NCBI GenBank assembly: GCA_973895155.1
Contig: OZ316899.1
Coordinates: 13,891,934 to 13,955,933, forward strand
DNA from: Marsupella aquatica
Lineage: Eukaryota > Plantae > Marchantiophyta
Length of the DNA: 64,000 nucleotides
Reading direction: 5' to 3'
The translations under genes were made by a program, and so were the position numbers. The first letter of the stretch is position 1. Every line of letters starts with the position of its first letter. Shown here piece after piece: positions 5,493 to 51,100 of this stretch. The notes below the pieces were generated by a model, which saw nothing but the letters and a program-made list of their open reading frames with translations, did no database searches and was not told the origin of the DNA.

Positions 5493-8400
5493 CAATAATT
5501 CCAGTCTTGTAGAGAGAAAATTACGGGATTATTGTGTTGTACATTCATCTATTCATGTATTTCAGAGTGGGTCTTGAAAGGTTCACAGTAAGTTGTTGTT
5601 CTCCCCGATGGTAGGTGTACAATCACTGAATCACGCATCCACTATTCCACTGGTTATGGTGGGTCCGTGGGTGCAGTACGTCGTTAATGAACCCTATACA
5701 GTACAGGCGCCAGCCCATTGAATCGCAAGGGATCCTCATCAATCATGGACGAGGACATCATGAAGTCATCAACCAGGCCCGTGACCGAGAGGGTCGGTCA
5801 CAAAGGCTCAACTAAATTGTAAAATGATTACTGTAAGGAAGAAAATCATGTTTGACATGTGGCCAGTGTGCCATTTCTTATATTCCCAGTGTCCTACACT
5901 TGGTAGCATTCGCTAGAATCTAAAATGGCAAGAAAATCATATTTGAGATGTGCCCAGTGTCCCTAAATGGTGCATGAGACTTGCATTACTTTGCAAGTAT
6001 CATGCACGTAACACATCAATAAAATATTATTTACCTTGTATTTGTTATGGTTTTTCCAAACATTCAAACTAAATGAATGATCACAGGAATGATCTTTACC
6101 TTGTACTCCTTAAGTTTTCCCCACAGAAAAAGAATGAAATGAAATTTGGTATGCTCTCTTACATGAATGGAGATAATTGCTCGACCATATGTATTTGGAA
6201 CAAAATTTTGAAAGAATAATCTAGTATCCTGGAAACATAAATTGAAGTTGCACTGGATTAAGAAGTTTACACATTATTTTGCATATAAAGTCATGATTAA
6301 TTGAAAGATTCTGGAAAATTCAAGTTCTTGGTCTAAACCCTAAATCCAGCCATGCTCATCCATTACCGTCAAACAATACACTCCCATTGGTGACATAGGT
6401 TTAGGGTTTGATAGTTGTTCTTAATTTTCCGTTCATCCTATTGTGACCCTCGCAAACTCTTTTCGATGACAGGCCAGGTTAATGTCACACCTTATCTACA
6501 TTATTATTTGATAATAATGTTGCCCTTAATTGCCCTTAAATAATTCAATGTTAAACAACATTCAACATAACACAAGGCAATGCAAGAAACACATTCGAAC
6601 CTCCTGGATGAAAAGTCGTTCAAGAGTTGCACTTCCTAGTGCTTCACCAGCTTGAAGCTTCCCTCCTCGTTTTTATTGTCTTCTTTCGTTTATCATGCGC
6701 CCAGATTAGAAACATCAACTCTTAATTACTTTGGCACTGAAGATGTTGAAACCGATAATACTATCGTGGTTTTCTTTGTATTTACAAATCCGTCAGGGTT
6801 TCATATATAAAGAATATAAGTTTAACAAAGTAACCAGGGTGGGAATATACAAAAACCATGGCATGTTTTTAAATACAACAAAAATGATGGCAACGTTGTA
6901 AATTAGAACATGTTCAGTGGCAATGTACTGTAGTTAAAACAGACAGGGCAGTTAAATAAACGGTAGCAAAAGGGACCGCAGCAGACGTCCATGACAAACG
7001 CAATATTGCACACCTAAGTCCAGCGATGGCAAGAAGCTCTAACTTTTGACCCCTGCGTTGAAGTGAACATTATTGGCAGATTGGCTGGCCCTTAACCCCC
7101 TGGCCGGGAACCTCAATTCAACCTGAATACTAAAACAACCCTGGCGGACTCGGACTGGTGTGCCGACTCAGATAGTTATTATCCAGGGGTTTAGGACTTT
7201 AGGGTACAAATCGTGCAGAACCCCATGAATTTATGGTTTAGGGCGGGGAAATAGCAGTATATGATGCACGGAATAGCATTCTCGAGATGCACAAAATCCC
7301 GTTGAACCACAGGGAGTATGTACTCTGTAGAGTGTAGAAGGAGGCCAGAGTTGGGGCCGGTCCGGCCAGAGGAGAATATTTGTAAGTGGAGGAGTGATTA
7401 TTGACCGTTGGCTGAACTCCTGTAGAACTTTAAGTTCAGCTTTGTGGTGGGGGCCGAAAAAGGACTCTAAACTTCTTTTTTTGTCTGTGTATACGTTCCT
7501 CGCACACTATTCTGCGTATACTACTTGAAAAATAGTAGTTGCCCACTTGAACACTCGTTAGTTCTTGTTAGGCATAGAACTACACAGTATACTATCATCA
7601 ATGGCTCCCTCTATCTTTATTCTCTCCAACTTACTTTCAATGTGTTTGTTTTTTCCTTCTTTCTTCTTTCTCTTTTTTTCTTTTCTTTTTTCCCATGGGT
7701 GAAATGGGTCACCTGTGACACTGTTTCCAAGGGGCTTCATAAGAGGGGTGACTCTTTTTAAGGGACCTGTTTTTGTGTGGGAGCGTTCCATGTCTTTGTT
7801 TTATCGGTTTTTTTTAATTTAATTCTTTTTTTATTTCTTTTTCCTTTGGGTGAAATGGGTCACCTGGAAGAGGGACAACTCTTTTGAAGGGTCTAAAAAA
7901 GAGGGGAGGAATACAAAAGTAGTGGAAGAATAATTGTTAATAAATTAAACCAGTATGTGGGTCTAGTTGTGAGTTGTTAGTAACATTATTGAGCTTTAAA
8001 TTTCCAATCACTTTTTTGTCAATTTGGACTCTTCCAAAAGGAAAGTTGTTACGGACCCCATTAGAGGTCCCTTCCAAAATTCCTGGCACCAGAGCGTTGT
8101 CCTGAGGATAAGCAAAAAGGTGGGAAAGGTCTTGAGAAACACGCTGGGTGTATGGCTGCTTGAGATAGTAGATGGTTACCAACAAGACAACTCTAAGCAA
8201 CAAGACTTCTAATCAACCAAGCATCACAAAATTATCCACCTCATCCATAGGCAAAGCAAAGTAACTCATCCATTTACAAAATTGAGGACAACTTCTCCTC
8301 AATAATCAATAACTATAGATTTTTCTAAGTCAAAAGTAGGTCTCTATCAAGACCCTCCTAGCAAGTAACACCAAGTAGTATGTATAAGATTGCATCTCAA

Positions 8401-9441
8401 CCCCTCCAACAAGTCTATGAAAAACAAGGCTTCAAAATAGCCTATCTACTCTTGTCCTACACCATCATAACAACTTCAAGAACTTCAACTCTCAAGCAAG
8501 CAAAGCCTCAACCATGGAGAAAGCTCATCCCCTTCCATACTCCTTACTTATCATCCTTCAATGTTTCCTTCTCCCAAACTGAGTGGAAAATTGACCAGCG
8601 CTTCCGCACAAGAGTGAAGCCAATAATTTCCACCTTACTTTCAATGTTCTAGATATTGGGTAAGGATTTCAACAAAGGTGCCCCTTCCAAGCTACACAGA
8701 CCCCCAAGGCAAGACAAATCCACACCGGTGGGTGAATGAACAAGTCAATTACCAAGGCAGCTGCACTCAAGGTTAGGCAACACACCTCCAAGCACACATA
8801 AGCCCAATTCATTCACATCTACTTCCCCAGGTCCCTCTTCCATCAAAGAAACTACCTCCCAACTCTCAACTAGGCCCTTCAAACATTAGGCACCTAGAAG
8901 AGAGGAGCTATAGCTCTTTTACTCACAATCATGGCAATATCTCTCTTCCCCACCTCCAAGCTCTCAACTCTGAGAAAGTGAGAATGAAGAATGATCTCCA
9001 CCTTCCCTCCAAGCTCTCCCTTAAGCCCCTGACCTGCCTCCCCCATCAGAATTTGCAACTTCCTCCTCCAGCCCACTTCACACCAACCAAGCACTTGGCA
9101 GCAATTTACTAGCAGCCCAACAACTGCCCGCCACCTCTCCACCATAAATCGGGCACTAAATCCAAGTGAATGTTGAGCAAATAGGGACCAGACAACAGCA
9201 AAACCATTGACCAATCTCAATCCAACCTGAACTCAAGCTCCAACCACCCTCCAAGCCTCCCCAACACTTGTCAAGGCCTAACTTGCAGTCCAACTAGCTT
9301 TTGCCACCTCTATGAACTCAACCACCTGGTTAACCTCCTCAAATAGTAGCCCACCACCAAGGCAAGGCTTGACCTTGTCTCCTAGCTTGAGTTGTCATAC
9401 TCAAGCTTGAGCTTCACCCTTAGCCATGCCAACACCAACAC

Positions 9442-10970: not shown

Positions 10971-11034
<64 letters not shown>

Positions 11035-11036
<2 letters not shown>

Positions 11037-12200
11037 AGAGGAACATGGAAGACTAATGATGACAACCCTCGGAAACTAAATGGGATGTGGATATAAGTCT
11101 GGACTTTGTCATATGAGAGGGCATGACCCCCATAACACTTCAATCCTAATACATCAATATTGGTTTACATAAACCTGGGCTATCGGAGTAGACCCAACAA
11201 ACCTAGGCGCCCACGTTTGGCCCTGGAAAATACCCTAAAAACGCCGCCAAAGCAACGGCACTGCCATTTCTTGAGTCGGTTGTTTGTGCCCAGTGGCTCC
11301 TGAATTACATTCTAAGCCATACGAAAACACCACACACTGAGGTCTGTGACGTTGCATTATACACTGTAGCAAGCTCGTGCCAGCTCTGGCAAGGATCAGC
11401 TTCAACCTGCTGCAGCTCGTAAGGACAACCTGTTCACAGATCGTGAAGGAGGAAAGGTGTCGACTGTGCAGGATTCAGTAGAATCCAATGGGTGATAAAA
11501 ATAAACAGGTACAATGTGTGACTATGTATGGGAAAATGTTCATATCTAATACTTTCTGAAATACGAAATTGCTCATACTGTCATCGCTCCAATAAAATAG
11601 ATGCTTAGGATGAAGTGACTAATCTATCCCTAGCCCATGTCTCCCCGTAGCCGTCCGGACAATGCTACAGAAACATGGGACATGAGATTTTGTTTTTACC
11701 ACATTATTTCTACCCTGTGACGGGGGCTGAATGAAGGCGCAGGGGATGTGGATCACTTCAGTCAAGTGATCCCTAGGGACAGAGTATGGCCCATGCTCAA
11801 TGTCTCTGACTAGACATTGGAGTAAGCCGTCACTCATCGAAAAATCGCATGTGTAAATGGGTACACTGGATTTAATTCTAATGATAATGAGAAGCTACGA
11901 ATGATCCAGTGATTTACGGGTATGGTGAATGTAGATGGTTATGATATCTCTGAGTGATGATTCTATGGTTTAACATCTACCAGTGTACATTTATTAAATT
12001 GAACAGCGATTGGCATATAAGAAATTATGAGTATACTATTACCATCTATATGATATGTGTATGGATATGAGTATAAGTATGGGCGATGCACGCAACTGAA
12101 GAATAAATTGTGGATTTCGGAATGCTATGTCGTCAGTAACAATCGGTCCTGAGTTATATCAGGGTGTGATACTATGTGTATGGACACAAGTTTCTATCGA
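11035..12200 (+). repeat. Upstream pseudo-LTR (1166 bp)
   Basis: Near-identical to 17551-18716; two substitutions spotted by eye (TCTAATACTT/TCTAATGCTT and AGCGATTGGC/AGCGATCGGC). Bounded by CT tracts at 10975-11034 and 12201-12211. Confidence 0.95.
11623..11783 (+). ncRNA. Conserved multi-stem RNA structure, candidate ribozyme (copy A)
   Basis: Five stems whose pairing is preserved by compensatory changes in the diverged copy at 19401-19563; invariant ATGTCTCCCCGT, ACAGAAACAT and GTGACGGGGGCTGAATGA. Confidence 0.75.
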
Positions 12201-13827
12201 TCTCTCTCTCTTGACCCACTTTCCCAGCTGGCCCTGGAAAAACCGATTGTCACTAACTGCTATATGCATTATTGGACCACAGAGTGTCTGGATCACTGAG
12301 CTCAGGCAACTTGGGTACGAGGAACGCCTCCCCAAACCTGCCCATATTGGCATTCAAGCCATCATGTCGACGATCGAATCAACTGTATTACATGAGTTTA
12401 TCCAAACTTTTGATTCCGCACTGATTGCCAAGGCAAATGAAGGTCCGCAAATCTATCTCTTGAGTACTTTGGGCATCTAGGAGTTTTGTGTCATCGCTGA
12501 CCTTGATGCTCGTAAACTGGGAGACCAAGCTTTGCAACAACTCAAGGACTACTCGGAATCCCTCCGTCATATGTTGGAGCAGGATAATAAGAAATACTCA
12601 GCTGCTGAGGAAACTGCCAACAAGATTGCTACGGCTATTCACCGGCCATATCAGGCCCCAAGTAGTACACCAATACCACCTCCGGCAGCAATGGCTACAC
12701 AGCTACAGAACAATCCATTATTCAGAATGCACTTCTATCGGGCTGAGGAGATACCCATGTTGCAAAGACACATCTCATTGGTTGATTCTTCACAGAAGGC
12801 ATCTATGAGTCATTTATCAGGTGGAGACCAGTACATTCCTACGTTCCCTCTTAGGAATTATGAGTGGGAGTTGTCACGCAACGACGGACAAGCATGGGCT
12901 GTTCCGAATCTCAACATGCTTGCACCCATCACACTGGATATGTGGAAACAATGGGCCACCATATCTGATGCAGAAATACAGACATGCAGAGAACACGCAC
13001 TGGTTGCCGATTCCCCATCCAAACGGTATCTTGGGAATAGTGCGTGGCCCATGAAGAACTTCGCGGCCGGGAAATACAGCTGTGCTGAACCTGCTCTGGT
13101 TCGTGTAAGGCTCGACCTTAACACTAAGTCTCCACGGGAGGAATCCCATCCATCGAAGATGTGGAATTGGCACCGGCCTTTTTTAAAATGTGATTGTATG
13201 TCTTCGCGGGATAAGAAAAACTCATGTGATTCCAAGATGCTATGGTTTGACCATGGAATATGGTATATGCTTACACATATGGACCTGTTTTTTGAAGCTG
13301 AAGGAATGCCCGGAAAAATGATGTCTCTGCTTGTGTTTTTAAGCACCGATGCCAAGCCATCAGTACTGGATCACATCACTTTTATGTTCATCCGGGAGAT
13401 GATGATCAACGCCTGCCTGGGGCTCTACAATAATCCACTGGCACCCGTGCTACCCGAATGTGGCCGTGGACATTGTGTCCAGATGATTGAACGGCTTATT
13501 AAGCCACCAGAATTCTCTGATGCTATCACTGAGGATAGTAGATCGGGCGCCAAGAGAAGATGGGACCTCAATGATACTCCTGTCCGTAATACTGAGCCTC
13601 AGCGGAGGTCTCTCTTCCGAAATCAGACACCAGCCGGTACACCTAATTATGGCACGGGGTATGGGCGTGGATACAACAATCACAATTCTGCCCCAGCGCC
13701 TGGACAAAATTCCTATGGACGTGGACGCAATCGTGGAGGTCGGAACCACCACCAATACAATGGTGGACCTCGCAACAATAACTATTCTCCACTCCAACGT
13801 CGAAACATCAATTTCGACCAACGATAG
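12127..13827 (+). pseudogene. PLE ORF1, unknown protein (~520-560 aa) with Cys/His cluster and RG/N-rich tail; one in-frame TAG at 12478-12480
   Basis: ORFs 12127-12480 and 12532-13827 share a frame, and homology to 20287-21823 spans the stop (WITELRQLGY/WSRELLSLGY; WNWHRPFLKCDC/WNWHRPFLRCSC; WFDHGIWY/WFDHAIWY). Start codon uncertain. Confidence 0.8.
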
Positions 13828-14964
13828 AGGCTATACCGGCAATTACACTGCATGACATAATATATGCTGCTCGGATCATATGACGTATACTTGGGATACC
13901 TAGACATGCACTCCATCTTCTGAATCATTGAAAATAGATCTGTTTTGATGATGCATTTTCATACCATTTTTGCGGGTCTTACATACACCGGGAGCACAGA
14001 ACCCGTATGTACCCGGGCTTGGATCCGGATGATTTATGGCGAGGTCTCACTTGGAGACTAGATCACAAACTATCCTTAGTCTGGACAAAAGCAGTGGTTC
14101 ACTGTCTAGTCAACAATGTAATACGTCCATGCCAATTTAATAGTTTGACCACGGCTATAGGTTTATGAATGCTCATGCATCACAATGATCTTGCATATTT
14201 TGTATGGTTCGGATTTTGGAAACATCAACAGGGCAAAACTGCTTTTGTTGGTAGATGTTGATATGTTTGGGCAATACTGCTGATAGATACACATGCTACT
14301 GATGAACTTGAGTTATATATGACACGACACGAATCATGATCCTGTTTAGGATAGCTTAATGCATGTTGATGCCCGATAGGACCTTTCTTGCTTGGCTGTA
14401 TGATATGACTTTTTAGTGTCTGGCGGGGCTTATAATGTTAACCATTCACATGATATCCTAAATGGTCTACGTCTTTCCTTGACTGCACACATACTACCTT
14501 GAGATTATGCACAGCATCTCACTGAGGTTCTTGAAGTATGGGCAGCACTAATGGGATATATCTTACCTTGGGATAATGCACGTTATCCCACTGAGGTCCT
14601 GAAAGATATGTAGTCAATCATCATGGGTTTCGGTTGTGTTTATAAGCTTGGACGTCACCACTCTTTACTTTTACTTGATCCACAAATATCCATTAACTAC
14701 TGTGGACTGGAATACTATGTCATGGCTATCGCAGACTTGACTTTACTCTCGGAATGTTCTGAGTGGAATATTTTTCAGTTGACGGCATTGCATCAATCGT
14801 CTCGACTCAGATCTTATAATACAGTGATCCTAGTACCTGCAAGCGAACACATCATTTACGGATACAAGATACCAATTTGCCACTACCAACTGTTCCCGAC
14901 AAATGATACCTGTTAAACACCACTTTACATGCGGATGAGACTGCGCTGATCTATTTTATTTGCA

Positions 14965-17190
14965 ATGGAAGATACTCCTACTCCTATACAGGAGAACCGC
15001 AATGACGACTCCATGATGGATCCAACACAAAATGAATCACCACAGAGGGTCATGATCACACTTCCGCATGGACGTTGGTCCATTACACGTACCAAAGACC
15101 GAAAGATCATTGGTTATATACATCTCACATACGTGAATCGGGGTTTTGAATGGATTCGGGTGAAATCCATTTTTCATGAATTTCTTTGGTCACACAAACT
15201 TGAGGATGCTGCTACTGCCTTGGATGATATTATATTTGGGTGGAGACACCTACCACCTATTTCTACCATGGTCTACCTACCAAGGGCGGTATTTTGCGAC
15301 TTCACTATCACTGAAGCCGAAGATACTGTGAGACCATGTGACTGTGGGCAACGACGTTTTTGACCTTTTGTGGATAATTTAACTGCTCTCGATGGCACAC
15401 AAGCACATGTCAGAACAGCTGATCTAAACATCATACATAGCAAGATACTTCGAGACATGTTAAGATGTGGACTCAACCACATTCCTATGCAACCCACTGA
15501 GCTTGCGGAGATTATTCAGGAGGTGGATAGGGCATGGCACAAGACTGTTGGGCTACTTGATATCGACCCACATATGCGAGAAGTTGGGACCACTTGGATT
15601 ACATCACAAGTGGACAAACAACTTCGTGCGGGTGCACGGAACAACACAGGCGGACATCGTATATCCACAAGATATTTACTACCGGCCAATGCGGTAGATG
15701 AGTTGAGATACCTCTCAGAGAGGTTTTTTATGGCTGGCTTAGATAAAGCCAACAACAACATTTCCATAATTTGCATTCAACATCTCCGACAAATGGCATT
15801 AGCCAGATTGAGGGAACCAGACTTCACTACTATCCCTACATCGACTGAACAAACTATGATAAACCTGCAACAGTCAATCGAATCACTAATTCCCGAAATC
15901 AGATTTCGGCCGCTTGGATTACCATATCTTATGGCTACCTACAAACTCCACAAACAGAAATATCGATGGATCACCAGTGCATCAAATTGCATCTTCTCTG
16001 GTTTGGCTAGCTTGATCACACAGGTACTCAAGCTGCTACTGAATGAAATACGAGACTGGTGTGGGAAGCAGACTCATGCTATTTACCTGATTACTGGCAA
16101 ACGATTTAACTTCTTATGGATGATTGAATCCATGTTTGAATTTGTCCTCAACCTTCCGACAAATATCCACAGCATGTTTGTTGCTGACATAACACGGTGC
16201 TACGAAATGATCCCACTCACGGGTGATGATAATCTCCCAGAGGCTTTGGAATACATTGTCAAGAAGGCTTTTCGACATCACAAGGGTCAGGCTAAATCAC
16301 ACAACGTGTGGGTACACTTTGATACCTCTAACAGGATGGCTGATAAAGCACGATGGCATTCACGAATACCAGGCAAAACGTGTTGGATCGAGGTCACACA
16401 AGCACGCTTCATTCAGCTACAAAACTGGTTGATTCATAATTGCTACATTCGACTTGGTGACGCGACATGGCGACAACATACCGGAATACCAATGGGATTT
16501 TCATGCTCACCTCTGTGGTGTAATCTCTACTTTGTGGCATACGAAATCCGGTTCATGCTCAGGTTGGCAAGACTCCAACGTTATGATTTGATGGAGCTAT
16601 TTCAATCTACATTTCGGTACATCGACGATTTCTGTACCCTCAACAACACACAAATACAAGAGTTTCTACAGCCTGATCATCCGCGTAACGAAGAATCACC
16701 GTTCTGGATTTATCCACTACAGATTGTGGAAATCAAGGCCGAACTTGACAAATATGTGGAAAATAATGAATTTTGGGGCACCAAAGGACACTTCCTAAAT
16801 GTCCTAGTGGAGATCGTGGACACACAGACGGGAGAACACACTACGACCAAATACGATAAGCGCCGATGTCTACCGTTTCCCTTCCAACAATATATCCAGT
16901 TCAAATCTAACCGACCAGTGCAACAGGCATACAATATCACAATTTCGCAAATGTTGCCCATTCTATATATGGCCAACTCCCCTGTCTTAGCTATGGCGGA
17001 ACTAGACAGGCTTGCACAGACTCTTTGCGCTAATGGATTTGCCATTCATCGAATATTCAGGTTAATGCTCAGATTTTGTACTGAACAACTACTACCTGGC
17101 ATTAGACTTGACATTTCGGCAGTGATCTACATGCTCCGACAGCGAGCTTTTAATGATGCCAATGCCAGAGTCCGGCAATCCATACAATGA
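14965..17190 (+). pseudogene. PLE ORF2: CxC linker + Penelope-type reverse transcriptase; one in-frame TGA at 15361-15363
   Basis: ORFs 14965-15363 and 15370-17190 are in frame. RPCDC..HVRTADL..LRDMLRCGLNHIP resembles the Naiad/Chlamys CxC linker; RT motifs DKANNN, YKLHK..YRWI, VADITRCYEMIP, GIPMGFSCSPLWCNLY, FRYIDD, HFLNV, YDKR. Confidence 0.9.
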
Positions 17191-17429
17191 TACACGAATC
17201 ATGGATTAGAGACAATAGCCCGCCACTAGTCAATGACCACCGATGATGTACACGCACAATGGGATGCATTTCTCGCATCGATAACGATACCATTTGGGCC
17301 CAAGCAAGTTTTTTTGTCACGTTTGATTCAAGGGAGTAGCTGTTTGATATCTTTAAAGATCCAGATCTACAATGTTTTTCAGATTTTCCATGGAGAGAAA
17401 GAGAGCGAATGTTATCTGCTTTATTTGGA

Positions 17430-17474
17430 GAGTATGGTATGCACTCCCTCCTGGGGTGAGTGCATACCATACTC
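17430..17474. other. Perfect 17-bp-stem hairpin
   Basis: GAGTATGGTATGCACTC (17430-17446) / GAGTGCATACCATACTC (17458-17474); a second imperfect hairpin follows at ~17484-17523. Confidence 0.9.
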
Positions 17475-17516
17475 ATCCCGGGAGGGAGCTCCATACCATG
17501 GGTATATGGTGGTGGG

Positions 17517-17550
<34 letters not shown>

Positions 17551-17552
<2 letters not shown>

Positions 17553-18716
17553 AGAGGAACATGGAAGACTAATGATGACAACCCTCGGAAACTAAATGGG
17601 ATGTGGATATAAGTCTGGACTTTGTCATATGAGAGGGCATGACCCCCATAACACTTCAATCCTAATACATCAATATTGGTTTACATAAACCTGGGCTATC
17701 GGAGTAGACCCAACAAACCTAGGCGCCCACGTTTGGCCCTGGAAAATACCCTAAAAACGCCGCCAAAGCAACGGCACTGCCATTTCTTGAGTCGGTTGTT
17801 TGTGCCCAGTGGCTCCTGAATTACATTCTAAGCCATACGAAAACACCACACACTGAGGTCTGTGACGTTGCATTATACACTGTAGCAAGCTCGTGCCAGC
17901 TCTGGCAAGGATCAGCTTCAACCTGCTGCAGCTCGTAAGGACAACCTGTTCACAGATCGTGAAGGAGGAAAGGTGTCGACTGTGCAGGATTCAGTAGAAT
18001 CCAATGGGTGATAAAAATAAACAGGTACAATGTGTGACTATGTATGGGAAAATGTTCATATCTAATGCTTTCTGAAATACGAAATTGCTCATACTGTCAT
18101 CGCTCCAATAAAATAGATGCTTAGGATGAAGTGACTAATCTATCCCTAGCCCATGTCTCCCCGTAGCCGTCCGGACAATGCTACAGAAACATGGGACATG
18201 AGATTTTGTTTTTACCACATTATTTCTACCCTGTGACGGGGGCTGAATGAAGGCGCAGGGGATGTGGATCACTTCAGTCAAGTGATCCCTAGGGACAGAG
18301 TATGGCCCATGCTCAATGTCTCTGACTAGACATTGGAGTAAGCCGTCACTCATCGAAAAATCGCATGTGTAAATGGGTACACTGGATTTAATTCTAATGA
18401 TAATGAGAAGCTACGAATGATCCAGTGATTTACGGGTATGGTGAATGTAGATGGTTATGATATCTCTGAGTGATGATTCTATGGTTTAACATCTACCAGT
18501 GTACATTTATTAAATTGAACAGCGATCGGCATATAAGAAATTATGAGTATACTATTACCATCTATATGATATGTGTATGGATATGAGTATAAGTATGGGC
18601 GATGCACGCAACTGAAGAATAAATTGTGGATTTCGGAATGCTATGTCGTCAGTAACAATCGGTCCTGAGTTATATCAGGGTGTGATACTATGTGTATGGA
18701 CACAAGTTTCTATCGA
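17551..18716 (+). repeat. Downstream pseudo-LTR (1166 bp)
   Basis: Direct copy of 11035-12200; bounded by CT tracts at 17519-17550 and 18717-18729. Confidence 0.95.
18139..18299 (+). ncRNA. Same RNA structure (copy B, in downstream pseudo-LTR)
   Basis: Identical to 11623-11783. Confidence 0.75.
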
Positions 18717-19400
18717 TCTCTCTCTCTCTTTACAAGATGACCCATTCAATAATCAATCTGTCTCTCAGTTCAATTGCACCTTGTACCCCAACTCTGTATA
18801 ATTTTATTCATACCCACAATAAGTACTAAATCACAAAAACACATATAGTCAGGAGAAATATCTACGTATGTAGTCACCGCATTCAAGATAATACATCCAC
18901 ACCACCTATCCAGATCCACCCTAAATCTAACGGCTACCGCAGGCTTAAAAAAACTAAACCTAAAAAAACTTTTCTCCCCTCTTACGTAAGATGCCCTACC
19001 TACACACTTTTACCATTATATAAAGCATGCTCACCACAGGCTCTGACGCATAGTTCCTCCTGAAACATTCCTTTTTGCATGGTACTTCCCCCCTCTACGT
19101 AAAGCATTCTCCTGAAACATCTTCAACCTCCAGGTTGAATGACTGGCTCATATTCAGTTTATCTCTTCTCACTGTCACCCTATTCTTTTGTCTCTTACTG
19201 GTGGCACTCTGCCCCACTCTGTTCTTTCGTCCTTTACCACTAGCTCTTTTTTCTTAGCCCTATAGAATTACTTTCTGAGCAATCCAGTGCACACTCTTGT
19301 AAAGATTCCTGACCATAGCTAATGGCGCGAGCTGAATAGGTACCATTCTTAGCATATTGACTCCTTTGCTGTTATATTTTCATGAATAACTTAGTCTAGC

Positions 19401-19563
19401 CCATAACTGATATATGTCTCCCCGTTACCGCCTGGGCATCCTGGTAACAGAAACATATAGCATGAATTTGTCAGTTACTTGGCTTGATTCACCCTGGTGA
19501 CGGGGGCTGAATGACGAACCTAGGGCTTGCAATGTAGTCATGTCAACTACATGTCAGTTATGG
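19401..19563 (+). ncRNA. Same RNA structure, diverged subfamily (copy C)
   Basis: Closing stem CCATAACTGA/TCAGTTATGG; TATATGT/ACATATA; GTTACC/GGTAAC; CCCTGG/CTAGGG; ATGTAGT/ACTACAT; same invariant loops as copy A. Confidence 0.75.
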
Positions 19564-20286
19564 TTGATGGTCTACTTCTGTCTGTAAGACAAACAGATTG
19601 GATGCACCGATAGTCCATGCATAAAGCTCTGCTTAGAGCTGGATGCTAGTTATAATAAGCTTTATATGTGTTGTATACTGACCCTGCTAACTATCAATTT
19701 TTTTCTTGTTCTTAACAATGCAGCAATTCGCTTCTGTCCACACCACTAGTATCTCCAAAAATTATTTCTTGCTGACTTGATAACAAAATTCTTCCTACTA
19801 TACCCCTGGTTTTGAGATCTTTCTACCTATTAATACTTTGTAAAAAGGTTTTTTTGTTATTTCTAACACTTGTTATTTCTGTCACTAGTTTTCTGTCACT
19901 AGTTATCTTGGTCTCTTGTTTTACTCTGTCTTTCATGCAGCAGACCCTGCTACTGCGCTTTGACTATGCTAACTGTATACACATTATGCTAGTGGATGGA
20001 TCATTTCATGAGTATTAATTTCTCTCTCGTCAGACCTTTTCATTTCTTTGGACTTTACCATGTGTCACCGGCAGTATATGAAGTTTTTTAACTTGGACTA
20101 TAAAGGTGTAATGTATATATATCTAAGACTCCTCCCAGACCCTACTGTAGGACCATGACATGCGATAGGTGTGGACAAAGTAATATCTTGATGTGGCCTT
20201 GATTGGGTGTTTTTTTGCTACTTTATTAACATCTCTCTCTAACTTTATTCCACTCCTCTGATTGGATTCGGAGGACCGCTATCAAG

Positions 20287-21823
20287 ATGATTACTAATCC
20301 CACACATCGATGTTCTGTCTGCTCACAAAAACGCTGGTCACGGGAACTCTTGTCTCTAGGATATGATAATGACCTTCCACGCCCATGTAACATGGCACTC
20401 CAAGCAACACTGGCTTCTATTCGCCAAACTGAAATCCATACTGCCATCCAGACACATGATCGGGAAGTAATGAATCGCGGGGAGGACGAAGCACCAGGTC
20501 AGTTACTTCTGCATGTTTTAGGGATCAATGAATGGTTTATTGTTTACCAGGCGGCCGGCTGTATCAGCACTGAGGCTACTATGACCAAACTCGATTCCCT
20601 CATTAGCTCTCTAGACAGTTTCGAATACATTGATGAAGACAAACTAGAAACATCCCGCATCACTAGTCGTAAGTTAGCACGCATGCTCGCCTATACACCG
20701 AATGTTCCGACCACAAACGATAGTCGTTCTTCTTCACCTGCGGCTGATGTTGCTTCAAAGCTTCGCGAAAACCCGCTACTCAATACCGCTTGGCTATCGG
20801 AGGAGGAATGCATTGCCTTTGACGAGGCGATCGATGGGGTACAAACATCACAGAAGGAACTGGACGATTCCAAACAGGACGGGGAGCCGTTTATTCCCAA
20901 CAATCCCCCACGTTTTCTCGAATGGGAATCGGCTCGTCAACAATCTGGCACCTATCTCACTCGGTATGTGGAAGTCTTGGGCTTCACTGTCTACTGAAGA
21001 GATCAAAGTCTGCAAAGAGCACGCCCTCCGCAGCTTCTCTTGGATTGAAACCTCCCCCAATATATCAACTAATTGGCCCATGACTATATTTGGCGCTCCC
21101 AAGTACAAATGTACCATGGCGGCTGGAGCTAAGATTCGTGGTAACTTCGTTACCAATTCCTCCCGTTCCTCATAGGAACACAAAACAAAACTCTGGAACT
21201 GGCACCGACCTTTCCTTCGCTGCTCCTGCAACTCTACGTCTAAAGGTGGCTGCACTGGCCAGATCATATGGTTCGATCATGCTATATGGTACATTGCTAA
21301 TCATCTTGAGCTATTCTTTGCTGTGTCATCTACACAGGCGCGACTCATTCTTATGATGAGCTTCTTAGGAGGCGAAGCACGTCGGGTGGTATTGGATCAG
21401 GTCGCATTCTTTTTTACTAGGCAACTTCTACTAGAAGCAGCTGGTGAGCAACTTCGGGATCCCTCGGCACAGCTACTTGCCAATCATGGGGAAGCTAAAG
21501 GTGCTCGTATCATCGAAATGCTCATCAAACCGGGAGAATTTTCGGAGCAAGATCCTACGCCCAAACGTAAATGGAATCTAAATGGGAATTCCCCATTCGT
21601 AGAATCTGCTAATCGTAAGGGCTTCTATGCGAACCAAACTCCCCAACGTGGACGTGGACGCGGCAACTATTCATGGCAACCCAACACTCCCCAATCAGCA
21701 CCTGGAGCACGGCCGCGATTCCAGAACAACAAAGTTCCCAACAAAGCACCAACCAGCAATACGGGATCTTCCATCGGGCAATCACCCCTGCCACGCCGCA
21801 ACATGAACTTCAACGATGTTTAA
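20287..21823 (+). pseudogene. ORF1 homolog (one frameshift ~20940, one TAG at 21173-21175)
   Basis: ORFs 20287-20997, 20702-21175 and 21323-21823 piece together into a protein collinear with 12127-13827. Confidence 0.8.
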
Positions 21824-21992
21824 ACATAGTCGCTTTAGCATACCATCGAATTGGTCATAAATACTAATACTGGAGCATAAATCTTCCTTGCTTTGTTTTC
21901 GATAGCATGAATTTGCACCAGCTTTGATGAAACTGCGCTTCTTATCCCTGGGATTACTATGCTTTGCCTAAATTTGAACCAATTCATTTGTT

Positions 21993-22493
21993 ATGCTACA
22001 CATCGGAAGTCCACGCAATCACCTAATTATATCTTCCTTTACGGCATTATCTAACACACATGTATGCTTATCTACATTCCCAAAAGACCGACACCTTCTC
22101 CAACTTCCGCATGGCCGACGTACAATAACATGCAGTCGGGATCGTTCTTCTCTACAATTTATCCATCTGTTATACACAAGCAGATCCTTCGAATGGCTAC
22201 CTCTTCGATTGATTTTTGCGGAGTGTCTTGAACTGTGCCAACTGAAGACACTCATTCCTGCACTCGATGGTATATGTTTTGGATGGAAATACATGGATGC
22301 TGTATCTACACTTTGTTATCATCCATCTATGGTATTCTGCAACTTCAGCATTTCCTCCTTAACTACGGATCGCGAAACGTGCGCTTGTCAGTTTAACATA
22401 TTTAAAACCTTCTTAGATCCATTGACTAGCAATGAATTCCATTTAGTGGATACACCTTGTTCTAGCCATGTGCGAACGACTAACCTCGACTAA
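21993..22493 (+). pseudogene. N-terminal fragment of PLE ORF2 (CxC linker), RT deleted
   Basis: LPHGRRTITCSRDR..FIHLLYTSRSFEW..FGWKY..VFCNFSI..CAC..HVRTTNL aligns with 14965-15430. Confidence 0.85.
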
Positions 22494-23870: not shown

Positions 23871-26800
23871 ATGACGTTCCCATGTGATGGGTGTCCTGGG
23901 TTTGAGTTTGTTACTATTTCTCAAAGAGCTGCTCATAGGAGAGTAGTTCATCAGTCGATTTGCAGTGCCATCAAGGCCGATGGCACGAGATCTTCAGTCC
24001 GCATATCTGTAGCTTGTGATTGGCCGTGCCCTCACCGTTCTTGCTTGTCTCGCTTCCGTCGACCGAACCGCTTGCGGAACCATTATGCCAGAGAACACAT
24101 CCAAGGTACAACCCATAGTCGTGCATCGGTCCCAACAGGCGATTTGGGTGATTCAGTTCCCAGTAATGAAAGTCCCCCGGTGGCGACAATCTCGGAATTT
24201 GTGGACTCCCCAGAGGTGTTAAGTCAAGCAGATTTGTCTGTGGTGAAGTATGAGGGCATGGCATTGCTCTTGTGCATTACCTGCAATGTGATCCTGGACG
24301 GTTCCAACGTGAGGATGGTTTGCAGGCATGTCTGGAAGGATTTCGCGCCCCTCCGTAGAAATGGGGGACAAAGCTTATGGGGCCGACAAGATGAGCAACA
24401 GCTGTCACAGGCCATTGCAAGGATGCAATTAACCCCCCCAATGCAGTATGGGATCATTGCATTCGGGGATTAGTCTCCCCAGTCCCCGGTATTGTTGTTC
24501 GTAGAGGCTACTCGTGCCCCTTTTGCACTACCTACCACAGCGCAAGTAAGAAGACTATGCGTAATCACACGATACGAGTGCATCCCAAAGCTACCGACGT
24601 GACCATGTGTCACAGTAGTAGTGTTCAATGTCTTGTTCAAGGTGCCGGGAAGAAGTACTTTGCAGTCCGATGTCCAGACGACCAAGCCCGAGGTAGCACG
24701 CAAAGCCTGAAGTCTGCGCTGTCCAAGGCAATTCTTGAGATGGAGCTGACGCTCCCTGCACAGAACAATCCTCCCCCTCGAGAGCTATCCGCGTGGCTGC
24801 AAGCCACTAGATGGGTGAATGTTGCGACAGGACTCATACCAGAGAATTCAATGTACAATGATATCAGTGGTCCGATGCGTTTGGCTCGCTGGGAAGGTTT
24901 CCCATATGCATGGGTCCCGGATGTTGTGCTCTCATATGCCACGCTGGTGCAAAAAGTCTTGGTCGAGGCGGATTTCAGAGTGAGGACATTGGTTGTGAGC
25001 CCTGACTCCCCACAAGGATTCACCGAGTTCCTCCAGGAGTCCATGATAGAGAAGTATTGCTCAGTCATGACAAATTTCCTGTCCGCTTTATTGCTCTCTG
25101 CATGTGATCCTCTAGGCTCCCATGTGCTCCTTGTTGTGAAGGCTCCCGACTGCTTGAAGGTCCTTCTCCAAGCCCTAAAGATCCAGTTGGAGTCCCTTCC
25201 AGAGGGTCCCATAGACCCGGACCACTTTGACTACACTATCCTACACGACCTGTTGCTCGGTTTGTGGATCCCCCCACATCGGATGAAAGTGGTAGCCCAA
25301 AAATTGACGGACAATTTTTTTGCAGTTTTTGATCCTGTCCTCGCTCAAAGCGTGTGCACTCTCCACTGGTTATGCATGGAAGGAATCCACAGATATCACC
25401 CCAATGCTGTCAATGATGAAATTCTGGTGCTGAGCGGCAATCAAAATGGAGTTATGTTGCACTCTTTGGAATCGAGCGACAGCCGATGACCTGGATGTCA
25501 ACAATGCAAGAGCAATTATGGTATACGTGGAAGATAAACCCAGGCTAATAGAGACACCATTCAACTACATTTCTTCTTGGCAGACCCTTATGTGCTCGCT
25601 CATCGGCGAAAAGCCTAAAAGGCCGGATCTCATTGCATCAAAGCCCGGTTACACCGAATGCAAAGTGAGCGGTTATCCGATCACACTGGACGGCTATAGA
25701 GAAATGGTGATGGAGGTGATTAGTGAATGCACCGTCCTCACACAGGAACAAGTTCTTCTGGGTCTGGACACGGATTGGTTGGAGCGACTATTGGAACCCG
25801 GGGGCAGCGTAATTGTGGACAAGCTCACCAAAGAAAGAAACCCGTTCCACGAGCACATGCACGATTTGCACCAGCATCTGTTCTCCAATGACATGAGATC
25901 ATCACATTTTGTCCATCACTACGACAAGAACGGCATCCAGATGTGGAAGAAGAAGGCCCTGCGCGAATGGCTGGCTGCCACCGATAGATTGAGCGACCGA
26001 CTCACTTGGCTGCTGCATTTTACATCGGGTCAGCCAGCTAGGGCAGCGGAGTACGGCAGTTTCTTGATCCGCAACACCACAACCAACCAACGGACGTTCC
26101 TGTGGGCAGAAGGGACCTTGGTGATACACCTAACATATAACCAAATGTGTGGTTGAAGACGCTTGAAGCACATCATCCGGTTCTATGTCTGAGGGTAACC
26201 TTCCTCCAGTACCTTAGCATGGTGAGGCCTGTGCAGGTGTTTGTTGCGAGTCAATTGTGGGGTGGAGAGGAAGCAGCGGTGTACGCGGATTGTTGGTTTG
26301 TTGCAACCGGAAAAAGGCGTTTAACACGGCATGTGAGTGCAGGTGTGGAGAGGGAGTTCCTAAAATGATTTAAGGCCCCGTTTGGGATTAGGCCTCATCG
26401 GCACATTATAACCTTCTTTTCCGAGCCCATTCGGTTCTAGCTGCAAATATCGTTGGCTAATGACTGGCTGGATGCATCCGTAGGCCACTCGGTGTCCACC
26501 GCTGGCCTAACTATGCACAGAATAGCCAGGATTTGAGAGTTGTGGATCGACATGAGTGGAGGAACTTTAGGTTTGTCACAAAGAAGCTTCACCGTCTACT
26601 GAGGCTGCCGACAGACCTTAGGCGACACCTGGAGGCCAAGGCCGAGCCTGAGCCTAAGCCTAAGCCTGAGCTGCGTCCGGGCGGTCCGGCCCCACCTAGG
26701 TGTGGAAGTTGAGTTTTCTCCGCCCTCAAAGCGAATCCGGATCCTTCACAGATGTGATGATGGATCAAACACCGATCACGGTGACAAACTAGAGGGCCTG

Positions 26801-28618
26801 GACGCTGCTGCAATGTATGAAGCACGGATTGCAATTTGCAGCCTTGGTCATAGGGATTGGAAGTTGCATGAGCAAGCAATTGCAGTCGCTACAGTGGTGG
26901 ACAACATGCAGAATTTTGTAGCCATCCTACCCATGGGTTCCGGGAAATCGGCCGTTTTCATGGCAGCCGCTCGGAGTAGCGGAAGGACGGTGGTTGTCGT
27001 CGTTCCTCTGTATGATTGTGTTGATCCACACTCAGATGGCGGAGTGCAGGACCGCAGGCTTTGAATGTTTGGAGTTCAGGGTGAGCTGTATCCCTATGGC
27101 AGAGGTGCCTCCGCTCGTGTTTGTCCCTGTCGAGATTGCCATCCAAGAGAGTTTCCAAAGTTGGGCCAAACAACTTATTTGTGCCGGAAAATTGCATTCA
27201 ATCATCATAGACGAGGTGCATACGGTGTTGTGTCCCTACCATCATCAGTCCATGGCGCAGCTTCTTTGGCTTTCCCGACTGCATTGTCAGCTGATTGGAT
27301 TGATGGCCTCTCTACCACCCCGCAAGGAAGCGGCGTTATGGGGGAAGTTGGGAAGTCCATGGAAGGTGATTCGGGCCTGTACAACACAACCCAACCTCGA
27401 GTATAGAGTTGAGGAGGATGAGGCCAGGCTGGATTTGAAAATCGTGGAACTTGTACGCAATTGGGTGGCCGCCGCCAGCACAGATGACAGATCCCTGGTA
27501 TACACTATGACGAAGAATGAAGCTGTGGATTTGGATCAAACTCTGCAACAACATCATGTCCAAAGTTGCTTCTTAACCTCGGACATCGTGAAGGCAGATA
27601 GACTTAGCAAGCTACGAAGTTGGGAGGTGGGCACGCCTAAAGTCATGGTGGCGACCTCAGTGATTTCCTGCGGATATAACTATCCCAGCATTCGCTTGGT
27701 CGTGCATCGGGGAGGCTTTTATGGGTTGGAAGAGTACCACCAAGAGTCGGGCAGATGTGGACGGGACAGCCGGCCCGGAGTGTGCGTGGTGTTTTTGCAC
27801 AAGTACTATCGTGCTTGGGCGTTGTCCGCGCCATCCGTGCAAATTGAAGGAGTCAACAAGGAGAGCATGAAGATTGCGCACCAATGGATCGCGAACAGTA
27901 CCATTGGCGGCGATACAACCTTCACCTTGAGATGGACGGGAAGGCACAAGTTTCTGCCCTTCTTCCCGGCAGCTTGGCATGCGATGTGTGCCTGGAAGCC
28001 GCGGCTACCACGCCAAGCCAAAGTGGAGGCAATCACCCAAGACACCACTCGCACACAAGGCCAGATGGAGCAGCTGTTCAGGATGTATATATTCCGAGAC
28101 CGGAGAGCATAAGGATAGAGGCAAACATGCAGAAGGATATCATCAATCTCAAGTATGTTTGCCAGCATGGGGGTGATGGGAGGCGATGTCTCTTGTGTTG
28201 GGAGGACTCGCATAGCCCTGCAAATCATGGAATAAGGGAGTGTGGCGTAATGAGAGGGTTATGCCTGCGGTGTGTATCCAATCGCCATCGGGTTTCCAAC
28301 TGTAATGTGAAGGGTCAAGAACGTCATTATAATGCTTGCTTCAAGTGCTTCTTTCCGTTTGATAAAATTGACCAAACCCAGGTGCACAAGGGGGAATCCG
28401 GGAGCAGCACCTACAACGATCTGTCCGGAGAGAGGATATGAATTCTAATGTGGCATGCATATAGGAATGACGTCTCGCGCAGACGATTCAGGCAGCTATT
28501 TCCTGACATGCCATTGGATGACAGTAAATTTGAGCCTTGGCTACTTTCAAAGGACGTGGAGAGAATGCTAAACAATTTTGTGCGAGTGGCGGGAGCTATG
28601 ATGAGGATGAAACCATGA
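23871..28618 (+). pseudogene. Zinc finger + tyrosine-recombinase-like + RecQ-family SF2 helicase + Cys-rich C-terminus (fungal telomere-linked-helicase-like), multiply frameshifted
   Basis: C2H2 fingers (CDGC..H...H; CPHRSC..H....H); LHFTSGQPARAAE..RN; GIRPHRHII..DASVGHSVSTAG/NYA (26390-26520); helicase motifs LPMGSGKS, VVVVPL, IIIDEVH, VMVATS..G, YHQESGRCGRD; RQC-like Cys (LACDVC). No introns needed. Confidence 0.8.
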
Positions 28619-37845: not shown

Positions 37846-38903
37846 CACTTCTTTACAGTATTTAGCGTCACACACACACACACACACTAATTAGGGGTAG
37901 CTCTTGATTTGACACTATTTACCACCACCCTTAATTTTGGAAAATAAATTAATATATTGAAAAATATTGATAATAAGAGGTGACAATGTTATTAACCTAA
38001 ACTGCTCTCACTCCAAAGTTATCCTCGCTGCATTTTTAAAAATGATAAATCTGGGAAATTCATAAATCCAGGCAAACACGAGGGCAAACATTGATTTTTG
38101 ACATTGGCAAGGGACGCTAGATCTAGCTGAGGTGAACAGTTCTGTTGACAGACATGACATGTCTTATGCACAAAATTTAGGGTTTAGGGTTTGGCCCTAA
38201 ATGTCAATGGTTTGTAGTCTGAAAAATCAACTTAGTTACATCTGAGCTTCAGAATATCATAGCAAAGTTTCGCGCGAGTGAATTTTTAAGGGAGTCGAGT
38301 TGGCTTGACATTGATGCTACTGTTGAAGTGGCTCCTGATATTGATCAACCAGGTGAGGAGCCAGCTCAACCCTCTTCTCTTGGGTCTGGGGCTGTACGCC
38401 GTCTTGCAAGGATGACACACAGGGGACAGATTGTAGGAGATTGAAAAGATTGTTAGTTTGTAGCTTATGTGAGACAACATGTGCTATTCATAGTTGATGA
38501 TGGAAGTGAAGCAAACAGATCTTGTTTGCTCAATGTGGTTCAGGAACCCCAAACTGCAAATGTTAGGAGGAGTTATAAATATCTGAAGTTTGCTCAATAT
38601 TTGGGGTTTAGCATTTAGGGTTTAGGGTTTAGGGTACATGGAAGGAGTTATACGTTTCTGAAGTTCCCCCAATGTTTGAGTAGTAAAATTTGTAAACTGT
38701 AATAAAATATTGTGCGCATTTTTTAATTTCTTACAAGCAACTTTTAACTATTAACTTTAAATGTGTGTGACACTATTTGACTTGTGACCACAAGTCGTGT
38801 CACACCATATTATTGAGTGTCACACACCCTAATTACCGTCACTTACCTCAAACATCCCCTCACAGTAATTAGAGTGTGTGAGACTAAATACTGTAAAAGA
38901 GTG
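37846..38903. mobile_element. Non-autonomous TIR element, TA-flanked (Tc1/mariner-like MITE)
   Basis: TA|CACTTCTTTACAGTATTTAGCGTCACACAC ... GTGTGTGAGACTAAATACTGTAAAAGAGTG|TA. Confidence 0.6.
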
Positions 38904-48105: not shown

Positions 48106-51100
48106 TGTTATAACCCAAGGTTAAGTCTACCATTAACCAAGGTTAAACCTCCACCTCTAGGCAGTTACACTAACATCCTTAGTAACTACCTCTTGTATAA
48201 AGTCTTTCCCTATGAATGAGAAGATTGGTCATTCTCCATGTTGTGGTGTTTCAACACGTTATTAGCACGAGGCTCTTGCCATTTTTTAAGGACATCCTAC
48301 ACGGTTGAACATATAGAGGATTGTGATTCGGGATCAATTTGGGGAGAATCGAGGTTGCAAATTAGAGCAAGGAAGGAACAATCAAAGTTGGAGAATTGGA
48401 AAGAATTGAATCTCAAGTTGATATACACCACAATTTCCATTTCTGAGACCCATAGTGACCAACCTAGAAACGGTTATAGGATCAGACAGTACAACATTCA
48501 ACATTCTGATTTGAGCAGATTCTGCCTGATAAGGAGAAATTAATCAAGCGGAAATGGAGATGGGAGTATAACTACCCACAATTCAATCAGATAAAGGCCC
48601 TCACTCAATTTCCCTATCGTCTTCTTTCTCCAAGATTGGAATTCAGAGAAAAATACACACATAACTTGCAATTTTATAATCCTCATTTGAGGCCTGGACC
48701 ACAAATTCCTATTGTTTAAACTGAACCATTGAGATCTGTACTCACGCTATGGCTACTAACACAATCGAAAAGCTACATTTCCAAGCACTAAAGATAGACG
48801 GATCCAACTATCTTTCATGGTCCTTAGACACTGAGGCACATCTGACCTCCAAAAACCTCCAGGAAGCAATTTTAACAGATAACGACCCCACCCTGCAACA
48901 GAAGGCCCAAGCTCTCATACTAATCAGACACCACCTAGCGGAGCCACTCAAATGGCAGTACATGAACGAGTGCAACCCACGCCTCCTATGGGACAAATTG
49001 CATTCCTGATTTGACCACACTCGCACAATTTTCCTTCCTGCAGCCAGACACGACTAGGCCAACCTCCGTGTGCAGGACCACAAGACCATAGCAGATTACA
49101 ACAGCGAATTGTTCTGAATCGTATCCCAATTGGCAATCTGTGGACAGTCGGTGGGAGATGAGGAACAAATCAAAAAAATGTTGTCAACATTCCATTCATC
49201 CAACCTTATCCTATCTACTCAGTACCGGAACATGCGTTTTACAAAGTACTCCGAACTAATCGCTCACATGTTATTGGCAGAGAAACATCAACTGCTACTG
49301 CTACAGAATACCAAAGTAAGGCCACCCGACACACTTCCACAGCAACCACAGGCTGAAACGCACTTCACAGTTCAGCCGAGAGCATATGACACCCCTTTCC
49401 GTGGGCGTGGAGGCAGAAGAGGAGGAGGTACCTTCCGAGGCCGGGGTAGCACCCCCTAGCGTGGGGGCAGGAGCAACAACACCTTTCGAGGAAGGGGCAG
49501 GGGACGACCCAATTACAACAGCAGAGACTCCGGAAACTATGGCAGGAGAGACTACAATAACCAGCAACGCGGGCGGAACAGAGACAGAGACAACTCAATG
49601 ACTTAAATGACAGATCTGAAAACCCCCTGACATGTAACCGCAGCGGTACCAAAGGCCATGTCAAAAGAGTATGCAGAGCCCCAGCTCATCTAGTTACATT
49701 ATATAAGAACAGCCTGGACAAACCTGAGGCCCATGGTACCTTTATGGATTCCATGGAGATACACCTGGTAACAGGCTCCTCCACACAGACTAACCTGGAT
49801 GACGACAGCTCTCGTGTGGTCGACAGCGGGACCTCCCACTCAATCCTGCGCAGAAAAGAATACTTCAAACAAATCACCCCCTCACATCGGAATGTCACAA
49901 CAATAACAGGACAGCAGCAGATCGAAGAGGGGTATGGCCCAGCCACGATTATTCTACCAAATGGAACAGCAATAAACATCAAAGTGGCCATATACGCTCC
50001 AAGAGCCACAAGAAACAATCAGAGCTTCAGAGATATCCGGGACAATGGCCTGCATGCTCATATGGACACAACAAATGCACAAGAAGTACTGCACATCATA
50101 GGCTATACCCCTAGAGGTACAGAGATTAAGGAGACTCTAACAGCATATCCAGCTAGCTTCTACATTACCAAAATACACAGCTTCCACATGGAAGTACAGG
50201 CCCATTACGGAAACCTGGCACAGAAGACTAGGCCACCCAGGTACAACGATGTTCCATAAAATCATCAAGGACACTAAAGGCATTCTACATACAGTCCACC
50301 CTACTGCCATGAAGGGATCATGTTTGCCATGCTCACAAGGCAAATTTATAACCAGACCGTCACCACAGACAACAGAAAACAGAATCCCAAATTTCCTCGA
50401 GAGGGTCCACGCGGATGTGTGCGGACCAATTGACCCACCCAACGGACCATAATTGATGCCTCCTCCAAGTGGTCACAGGTCTCCCTGCTCTCTACACGCA
50501 ACCTGGTTTTTGCCCGGATACTGGCTCACATCCTAAAGCTGAAGGCCCAATTTCCGGACCACCCTATCAAAATACTTTGGGTGGACAACGCCGGCAAATT
50601 TACCTCCAGAACATTTGACGACTTCTGTACGTTTGCCGGCATTGACACGCAGTACCCCGTCCCCTATGTTCACTTTCAAAATGGGATAGCAAAGTCCCTA
50701 ATCAAGCGACTACAAATGATCGCCCGCCCTATGCTCATGCAATCAAATTTACCTCCCTCCGCCTGGGGACACGCTATCCTACATGCAGCAGCGATGCTCC
50801 AGTATTGGCCATTGGCATTCAACACGAGCACGCCTCACCATTTAGCATATGGAACTATTCCCGACATCTCACACCTGCAAACCTTCGGCTGTCAAGTGCT
50901 AGTGCCTATCATGGGTCCTAAGCGGACCAAACTTGGCCCCCAACGGCAGAAAGGAATATACATAGGCTTTGACTCGACATCAATCATACGGTATCTCGAG
51001 CCCACAACAACAGACGTATTCAAAGCAAGATTTGCAGACTGCCACTTCTTCAAAAATGTTTTCCCTACACTGAGCGTTCTGACAGGACTAAATCAGAAGG

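Follow-up and report, generated by a model that had tools for sequence, protein, structure and literature searches.

Penelope-like elements (PLEs) without an endonuclease (EN) are normally tied to telomeres, and the PLE-X group is the published exception. Craig et al. 2021 (PMC8557442) described these EN-minus Chlamys families from Chara braunii and Selaginella, in which the CxC motif is present and the GIY-YIG domain is absent. According to this work, PLE-X proteins are extended at the N-terminus by a part that bears a CxCX1-8C motif and is "likely separated by an intron"; the elements are spread genome-wide in Chara braunii and are specific to 28S ribosomal DNA (rDNA) in Selaginella, BlastP matches exist in mosses, and canonical hammerheads are reported. 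The locus analyzed here lies in a stretch of 64,000 nucleotides of the liverwort Marsupella aquatica (assembly GCA_973895155.1, contig OZ316899.1, positions 13,891,934 to 13,955,933 of the forward strand), hereafter the window. It contains an element with two open reading frames (ORFs) that is very probably a defective EN-minus Penelope-like retrotransposon of the Chlamys/PLE-X lineage, with a proposed integration into (CT)n microsatellites and a reverse transcriptase (RT) proposed to be expressed by splicing. The published picture is not overturned by this locus; rather, the PLE-X group is extended to liverworts and mosses. New here are the bryophyte hosts, the (CT)n junctions, a conserved acceptor-like motif and a predicted fold of the ORF1 core without a known match.

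The limits of the element are set by two direct repeats detected in a self-comparison of the window (11003-12211 and 17519-18727), each 1209 bp long and 99.835% identical. They differ by two transitions, 11551/18067 and 12011/18527, close to the approximately 2 differences in 1166 bp given by the initial annotation, which had been made from the sequence alone. The left edge of the 5' repeat is blurred by the (TC)30 tract at 10974-11034. At its other end, the 5' repeat adjoins TGACCCAC at 12212, and the 3' repeat, with the same terminal ATCGA(TC)6, adjoins unrelated DNA. These junctions place the unit at 12212-18727, with a 1209-bp copy of the 3' part of the unit placed before it; this partial copy and the unit together form the arrangement with pseudo-long terminal repeats (pseudo-LTRs) of Penelope-like elements. 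Its parts are the following:

10974-11034, plus strand: (TC)30 microsatellite of the 5' junction, in which the target tract on the upstream side runs into the (CT)16 at the head of the 5' repeat
11003-12211, plus strand: 5' pseudo-LTR, a 5'-truncated copy of the last 1209 bp of the element, ending in ATCGA(TC)6
12127-13827, plus strand: ORF1, about 566 codons (1.7 kb) in one frame, with an in-frame TAG at 12478-12480
12212-18727, plus strand: full-length element unit, 6516 bp, from the repeat spacing of 6516 and the junction sequences
12913-13515, plus strand: ORF1 core domain, 201 residues, WN..RPF.KCxC-x9-C..WFDH..W, with a confident AlphaFold model
13828-14964, plus strand: non-coding spacer between ORF1 and the RT ORF, 1137 nt (112-356 nt in relatives)
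14945-14972, plus strand: branch-point/polypyrimidine/AG-like motif CTGATCTATTTTATTTGCAATGGAAG, matching the acceptor-like motif conserved before the RT in relatives
14965-17190, plus strand: RT ORF, 741 codons, Penelope-type, with an in-frame TGA at 15361-15363
17519-17550, plus strand: internal (CT)16 with GGTGGTGGGAG directly before it, the start point of the pseudo-LTR
17519-18727, plus strand: 3' pseudo-LTR, the true 3' end of the unit by repeat comparison and junctions

Two long direct repeats around a coding part would also be expected of an LTR- or DIRS-type element with true LTRs. This explanation has practically no chance of being correct, since the affiliation of the RT, which is Penelope-type and carries CxC, already refutes it. 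Furthermore, Pfam detects no integrase, protease, RNase H or tyrosine recombinase in the ORFs and other open segments, and the 5' repeat starts at the internal (CT)n and adjoins the 5' end of the unit without a primer-binding site or polypurine tract.

The RT ORF displays a Y..R..EW N-terminal domain, the CxC motif (PCDC, 15337-15345), an HVRTADL linker (15406-15426), GLDKA, GIPMGFSCSPLWCN and FRYIDD. Pfam returned only a weak RVT_1 match for it, and a sequence search of the PDB gave nothing more. The DK motif reads GLDKA in all members of the family and shows the Chlamys trait of a DK without a conserved third residue.

Pfam gave no GIY-YIG match for ORF1 or the RT ORF, nor for the ten largest of the remaining open segments, both strands included. 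A GIY-YIG profile built from the N-terminal EN domains of three metagenome elements recovered with the RT profile (L026, L029 and L031) gave a best E of 0.92 across the six frames of the window between 10.8 and 23 kb and of 12 related loci, and the domain is absent also from eight full-length homologues and ten long relatives. The three source elements are intact single-ORF Penelope elements of the Naiad/Chlamys type, encoding 921-974 residues (L026 193-2958, L029 536-3460, L031 576-3422), and as positive controls they were detected, with an N-terminal GIY-YIG in Pfam (31.6, 18.4 and 20.1 bits, respectively) together with the RT. The RT of the window family aligns with them from the pre-CxC domain (Y..R..EW) through the CxC, the H..T.D linker and the RT core with its IFD-type region, so that only the EN part, the first ~250 residues with the GIY-YIG, is missing. 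EN-bearing Chlamys/Naiad elements as a group share pseudo-LTRs and a microsatellite insertion bias with the window element; they lack its extra ORF1, and their microsatellites are (CA)n, (C)n or (TA)n instead of (CT)n. The N-terminal 100 residues of the RT ORF were also considered as a decayed GIY-YIG, a candidate rejected on their alignment between the GIY-YIG and the CxC of the EN-bearing proteins.

RT homologues form at least 174 clusters at about 40% identity, with 680-790 residues and no GIY-YIG in any of them. An exhaustive search with an RT profile yielded 5107 proteins, with 326 representatives at E<=1e-30. The long matches come from gene models of C. braunii and, in S. moellendorffii, from EFJ12422.1 (E 1.7e-133); another representative covers 13 proteins of the latter species. 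A hidden Markov model of ORF1 matches the N-terminal parts of Chara and Selaginella gene models, and the nearest named relatives of ORF1 come from the liverworts Calypogeia fissa and Riccia. Among the genomic and metagenomic loci compared are:

L001: metagenome contig; repeats 100% identical, 581-residue ORF1, 694-residue RT
L004: 1.18-Mb eukaryotic contig; repeat, ORF1, RT, repeat
L005: Ceratodon purpureus; two tandem copies, intact 581-residue ORF1, repeats 99.9% identical
L007: Riccia sorocarpa, at 26.9 of 45.9 Mb (internal); repeats 99.1% identical
L011-L016: metagenome contigs; ORF1 followed by RT

Pseudo-LTRs are thus visible in L001, L004, L005 and L007 as well. Mosses and liverworts harbor the lineage widely and show recent mobility of it, and some metagenomes are rich in it. 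In this respect the initial annotation was well founded: it had recognized a Naiad/Chlamys-type Penelope element with CxC and the H..T.DL linker, no GIY-YIG and a separate upstream ORF1 (which it put at ~1.6 kb), and had regarded the layout as a family trait, which recurs in a sister element within the window, in Ceratodon purpureus, in Riccia sorocarpa and in metagenome contigs.

A maximum-likelihood tree of the RT recovers a clade with 100% support in the Shimodaira-Hasegawa-like approximate likelihood-ratio test (SH-aLRT) that takes in 43 of the 44 rows outside the outgroup, none of them with GIY-YIG, and in which the window stands together with Riccia, Ceratodon, Selaginella and Chara. Within this EN-minus clade, the window RT falls in a 17-row bryophyte group (97) beside three run-assembly contigs (99). 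In the genomic DNA of Selaginella and Chara, too, ORF1 is stop-terminated, the RT frame opens 140-176 nt later, and the gene models bridge the gap by an annotated intron. Hence, "two ORFs" and an "intron-separated extension" are two readings of one layout, and by homology the N-terminal extension of PLE-X is the ORF1 of the window element. In all genomic copies, this extension takes the form of a stop-terminated ORF1, with an acceptor-like signal before the RT.

These results bear on the claim of the initial annotation that the architecture is undescribed. The RT groups with the described EN-minus PLE-X of Selaginella and Chara, a family of the same layout, and the claim therefore fails. A Penelope architecture distinct from all known clades is accordingly very improbable, even though a stop separates the ORF1 and RT frames in all genomic copies that were compared, canonical hammerheads were not found, the insertions lie in (CT)n and not in 28S rDNA, and the window lineage is just 30-43% identical to anything in databases. 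Against it stand the homology of both the RT and ORF1 to proteins of Selaginella and Chara, the species of the published PLE-X, the frames of their genomic copies, which are likewise kept apart by a stop and 140-240 nt, and the fact that CxC, the lack of GIY-YIG, the CxC..C extension and the genome-wide spread in Chara were already reported (PMC8557442).

Placement in PLE-X was made through homology to the S. moellendorffii and C. braunii proteins, which is direct for RT and ORF1; the elements PLE-X1_sTam and the Chara braunii consensus (type 3) were compared by description only. They agree with the window element in the CxC, the H..T.DL linker, the DK motif, the lack of GIY-YIG, the upstream CxC..C part, the pseudo-LTRs and the streptophyte hosts. 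They differ in several respects. The host of the window element is a bryophyte, compared with only BlastP hints in mosses in the published work, and its junctions lie in (CT)n instead of a fixed 28S rDNA site. Its upstream part is a stop-terminated ORF1, as opposed to an intron-joined extension, with a 1.1-kb spacer in the window copy, and its hammerhead-like parts stand in another order, no canonical hammerhead having been detected in it.

The window copy is defective, with one nonsense codon in each ORF, on which the initial annotation was silent. Both the TAG of ORF1 and the TGA of the RT ORF, the latter directly after PCDCGQRRF and between CxC and linker, are nonsense mutations because they align to ordinary residues of relatives (in-frame stops were entered as X in the alignments). 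The sole in-frame ATG of ORF1 is at 12127, inside the 5' repeat. A second ATG, at 12264 (12264-12300), is the counterpart of the sister ORF1 start and is out of frame with ORF1 of the main copy; this is possibly a third lesion, unless translation begins at 12127 in the 5' repeat. From two differences in the 2x1209 bp repeat, about three substitutions would be expected across the 3.9 kb of coding sequence. Since two nonsense hits are unlikely among so few substitutions, the template was probably already broken before copying, or else the repeats were homogenized. Proteins for the copying of a broken template would then have been supplied in trans. As for the recent transposition proposed in the initial annotation, the identity of the repeats is its sole basis and speaks for it, with the broken state of the window copy on the other side.

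How the RT is expressed was addressed by comparing the region that precedes it. An acceptor-like motif (CTGAT/CTGAC/CTAAC, pyrimidines, (T)GTRCAG) precedes the conserved RT N-terminus in most of 14 copies, from Chara to bryophytes (for example L001 3135-3155, L005 7050-7070, L009 ~8170-8194 and L010 ~7985-8010), and it coincides with the annotated intron end in Selaginella. The motif is probably a 3' splice site, and the RT would be translated from a spliced RNA that uses this conserved acceptor just upstream. No conserved in-frame splice donor appeared among the copies compared. This absence speaks for a possible, though doubtful, alternative in which the RT is translated from an unspliced bicistronic RNA by reinitiation or by internal or non-AUG initiation. 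Such a mode also agrees with a conserved C-terminal motif of ORF1 that extends right to the stop, and with an in-frame ATG before the conserved N-terminal RT motif R(I/V)L.....GR in the window, the sister, L004, L010, L013 and L014. In L001, Ceratodon copy b (the intact copy, L005b), Selaginella (L009), L012 and L015, however, this motif lies upstream of the first in-frame ATG, and in most copies of the set of 14 the sequence before this motif resembles a branch point, pyrimidines and CAG, which argues against the unspliced alternative. A further candidate, programmed frameshifting from ORF1 into the RT, was rejected, since the frames overlap only by chance (two copies) and their relative phase varies, never being conserved.

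The spacer ahead of this putative acceptor contains a 42-nt imperfect direct repeat (14495-14536 and 14564-14605), and contig depth is somewhat higher there in run X2; a small nested insertion inside the spacer is possible.

ORF1 combines an N-terminal GY..LP motif, a long helix, a Cys/His core and an RGG-rich tail. Between pairs of ORF1s, dN (nonsynonymous divergence) is 0.12-0.15 and dS (synonymous divergence) is saturated, which leaves dN/dS not computable; the comparison indicates purifying selection. The family alignment defines the core as WN..RPF..CxC-x7-9-C..W(F/W)DH, with W84, C93, C95, W111, D113, H114, W117 and R161 near-invariant. Modeling of the full-length protein was poor, with a predicted local distance difference test score (pLDDT) of 53.8 and fold matches to coiled coils only, and the core-only model from 24 sequences reached a pLDDT of 87.8 and a predicted template modeling score (pTM) of 0.87. 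Searches with the core fold gave a best Foldseek PDB E of 3.1, VIA Z of 3.6 and BFVD E of 1.2, with no match in the ESM Atlas, and Pfam and PDB sequence searches returned nothing for ORF1. By these predictions, the core is a domain with a confident fold for which no relative of known fold could be detected, and it gives biochemical work a defined target.

By analogy, ORF1 is most likely a gag- or L1-ORF1p-like RNA-binding partner of the RT, because it combines a long helix, the Cys/His core and an RGG tail. LINE-1 ORF1p and the ORF1 of other non-LTR elements would work in a comparable way, the ORF ahead of the RT ORF contributing a long helix, a folded core that binds nucleic acids and a basic tail; they are unlike it in that no sequence or fold similarity was found, and the window ORF1 is not a member of that group. 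A bolder proposal holds that the ORF1 core replaced the GIY-YIG, either nicking (CT)n/(GA)n itself as a new Zn-dependent nuclease fold or capturing free 3' ends there. The confidence of the core model, the three Cys followed by W-F-D-H in a beta-beta-alpha stretch in most ORF1s from Chara to bryophytes, and the insertion of the lineage away from chromosome ends are in its favor, and a core that matches no known fold excludes no function. It is nevertheless unlikely: Pfam, PDB and structure searches matched no nuclease family, the coiled coil and RGG tail better fit an RNA chaperone, the D-H pair sits at a helix start rather than at a strand end as in HNH, and the proposal is speculation from a motif. 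If true, it would explain the intrachromosomal spread of EN-less Penelope elements from Chara to bryophytes, a question left open by Craig et al. 2021.

The integration of the element can be considered from its junctions. In the window copy, (CT)n stands at the 3' terminus, at the internal start of the pseudo-LTR and in the target. The window, L001, Ceratodon and Riccia share a CT-rich 3' end, and the pseudo-LTR starts at an internal (CT)n after a GGTGG..GGG motif in the window, Ceratodon and Riccia. L004 has T-runs both at the 3' end and at the pseudo-LTR start, and in L001 the pseudo-LTR start is lost at the contig end. The presence of (CT)n at all window junctions suggests integration by microsatellite microhomology. 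In a first step, the RNA would anneal through its ...CUCUCU 3' end to the (GA)n strand of a (CT)n microsatellite at a free 3'-OH, and reverse transcription would be primed there. Having reached the RNA 5' end, the RT would jump onto a second RNA, at its 3' end. Finally, cDNA of the internal (CU)n would pair with the upstream half of the target microsatellite, which would end synthesis and produce a pseudo-LTR of fixed length. The target of the window insertion was apparently the (CT)n heading the pseudo-LTR of an older sister element. The (CT)n shared by 3' end, pseudo-LTR start and targets makes this microhomology model concrete and testable. A working analogy is provided by Athena and Coprina, whose short 3' repeats are complementary to the priming DNA end. 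These elements also lack an endonuclease, and Athena has a coiled-coil ORF1; their RTs form another clade, which lacks CxC, and the elements attach to overhangs of telomeres and occur only at chromosome ends, in contrast to the window element with junctions that are all (CT)n and to the mid-chromosome Riccia copy.

Several points weigh against the placement in PLE-X and the integration proposed with it. We infer the priming and joining steps from junction sequences only. The CxC-x9-C spacing of the window ORF1 is just outside the published x1-8 (relatives have x7 or x8). The tree was a quick one, rooted on the EN-bearing L026, L029 and L031 and built without the curated PLE consensus sequences of Craig et al. 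and TERT references. In the run contigs, the element interior is one contig at about a quarter of the depth of the repeat, which gives no sign of many identical, young copies. Canonical hammerheads are reported for PLE-X, and Rfam found none inside any element in the window and ten related loci; a scan for CUGANGA..GAAA likewise gave nothing usable on the sense strand, both searches having been run without a positive control, as the Selaginella locus was negative too. The window copy may also lie in subtelomeric-type DNA, to judge by plant-telomere-like motifs and a gene resembling telomere-linked helicases. The window holds 13 short (TTTAGGG)2-3 motifs, nearly all on the plus strand, against 0.02 expected by chance, and no TTTAGGG array adjoins the Penelope element in the window. 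Their positions are:

3389, 4689, 7230, 10374, 35608, 35941, 38176, 38614-38634, 39031 (minus strand), 41768, 41916, 55216: telomere-like motifs

A further observation on hammerheads concerns the pseudo-LTRs. The only block conserved between those of the main and sister elements (11600-11790, also 18116-18306, and 19377-19570; 72% over ~100 nt) contains ATGTC|TCCCCGT, a GUAGC/GCUAC hairpin, AGAAACATGG and ACGGGGGCTGAATGA, that is, hammerhead-like parts with a helix-I-like pairing in a non-canonical order. The sole Rfam match is a near-threshold type III hammerhead in Chara braunii DNA (L010 1545-1600, minus strand; 42.7 bits, gathering score 48.5). It lies outside the element, on the strand opposite to it and ~3.7 kb upstream of the PLE-X-like ORF1.

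The sister element begins directly downstream of the main copy. It was described in the initial annotation as strongly diverged and of the same layout; it is real, and what survives is a partial, decayed 5' half (18728-22493) without the RT body:

18728-20241, plus strand: probable 5' pseudo-LTR of the older sister, ending in ACA(TC)6; 19414-19514 is 72% identical to and collinear with 11637-11734 of the main element
20230-21823, plus strand: decayed sister ORF1 in three frame pieces (20230-20994, 20678-21172 and 21176-21820)
21978-22493, plus strand: N-terminal fragment of the sister RT, with TCAC as its CxC

Amino acid identity to the main element is 37% for ORF1, which has one frameshift and one stop, and 41% for the RT fragment. 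Right after the break in the sister RT lie ORFs with a Helicase_C domain (23871-28618), and this helicase-like gene or its insertion may have removed the 3' half of the sister.

Two further observations were made outside the elements. Pieces of a Ty1/copia-type polyprotein (Pol_BBD, SH3_retrovirus and RVT_2) with at least one interruption occupy 49744-53205 of the window. In L001, a short gene with a Replitron_HUH Pfam match (9000-9230) is located ~1.4 kb beyond the 3' repeat of the intact element.

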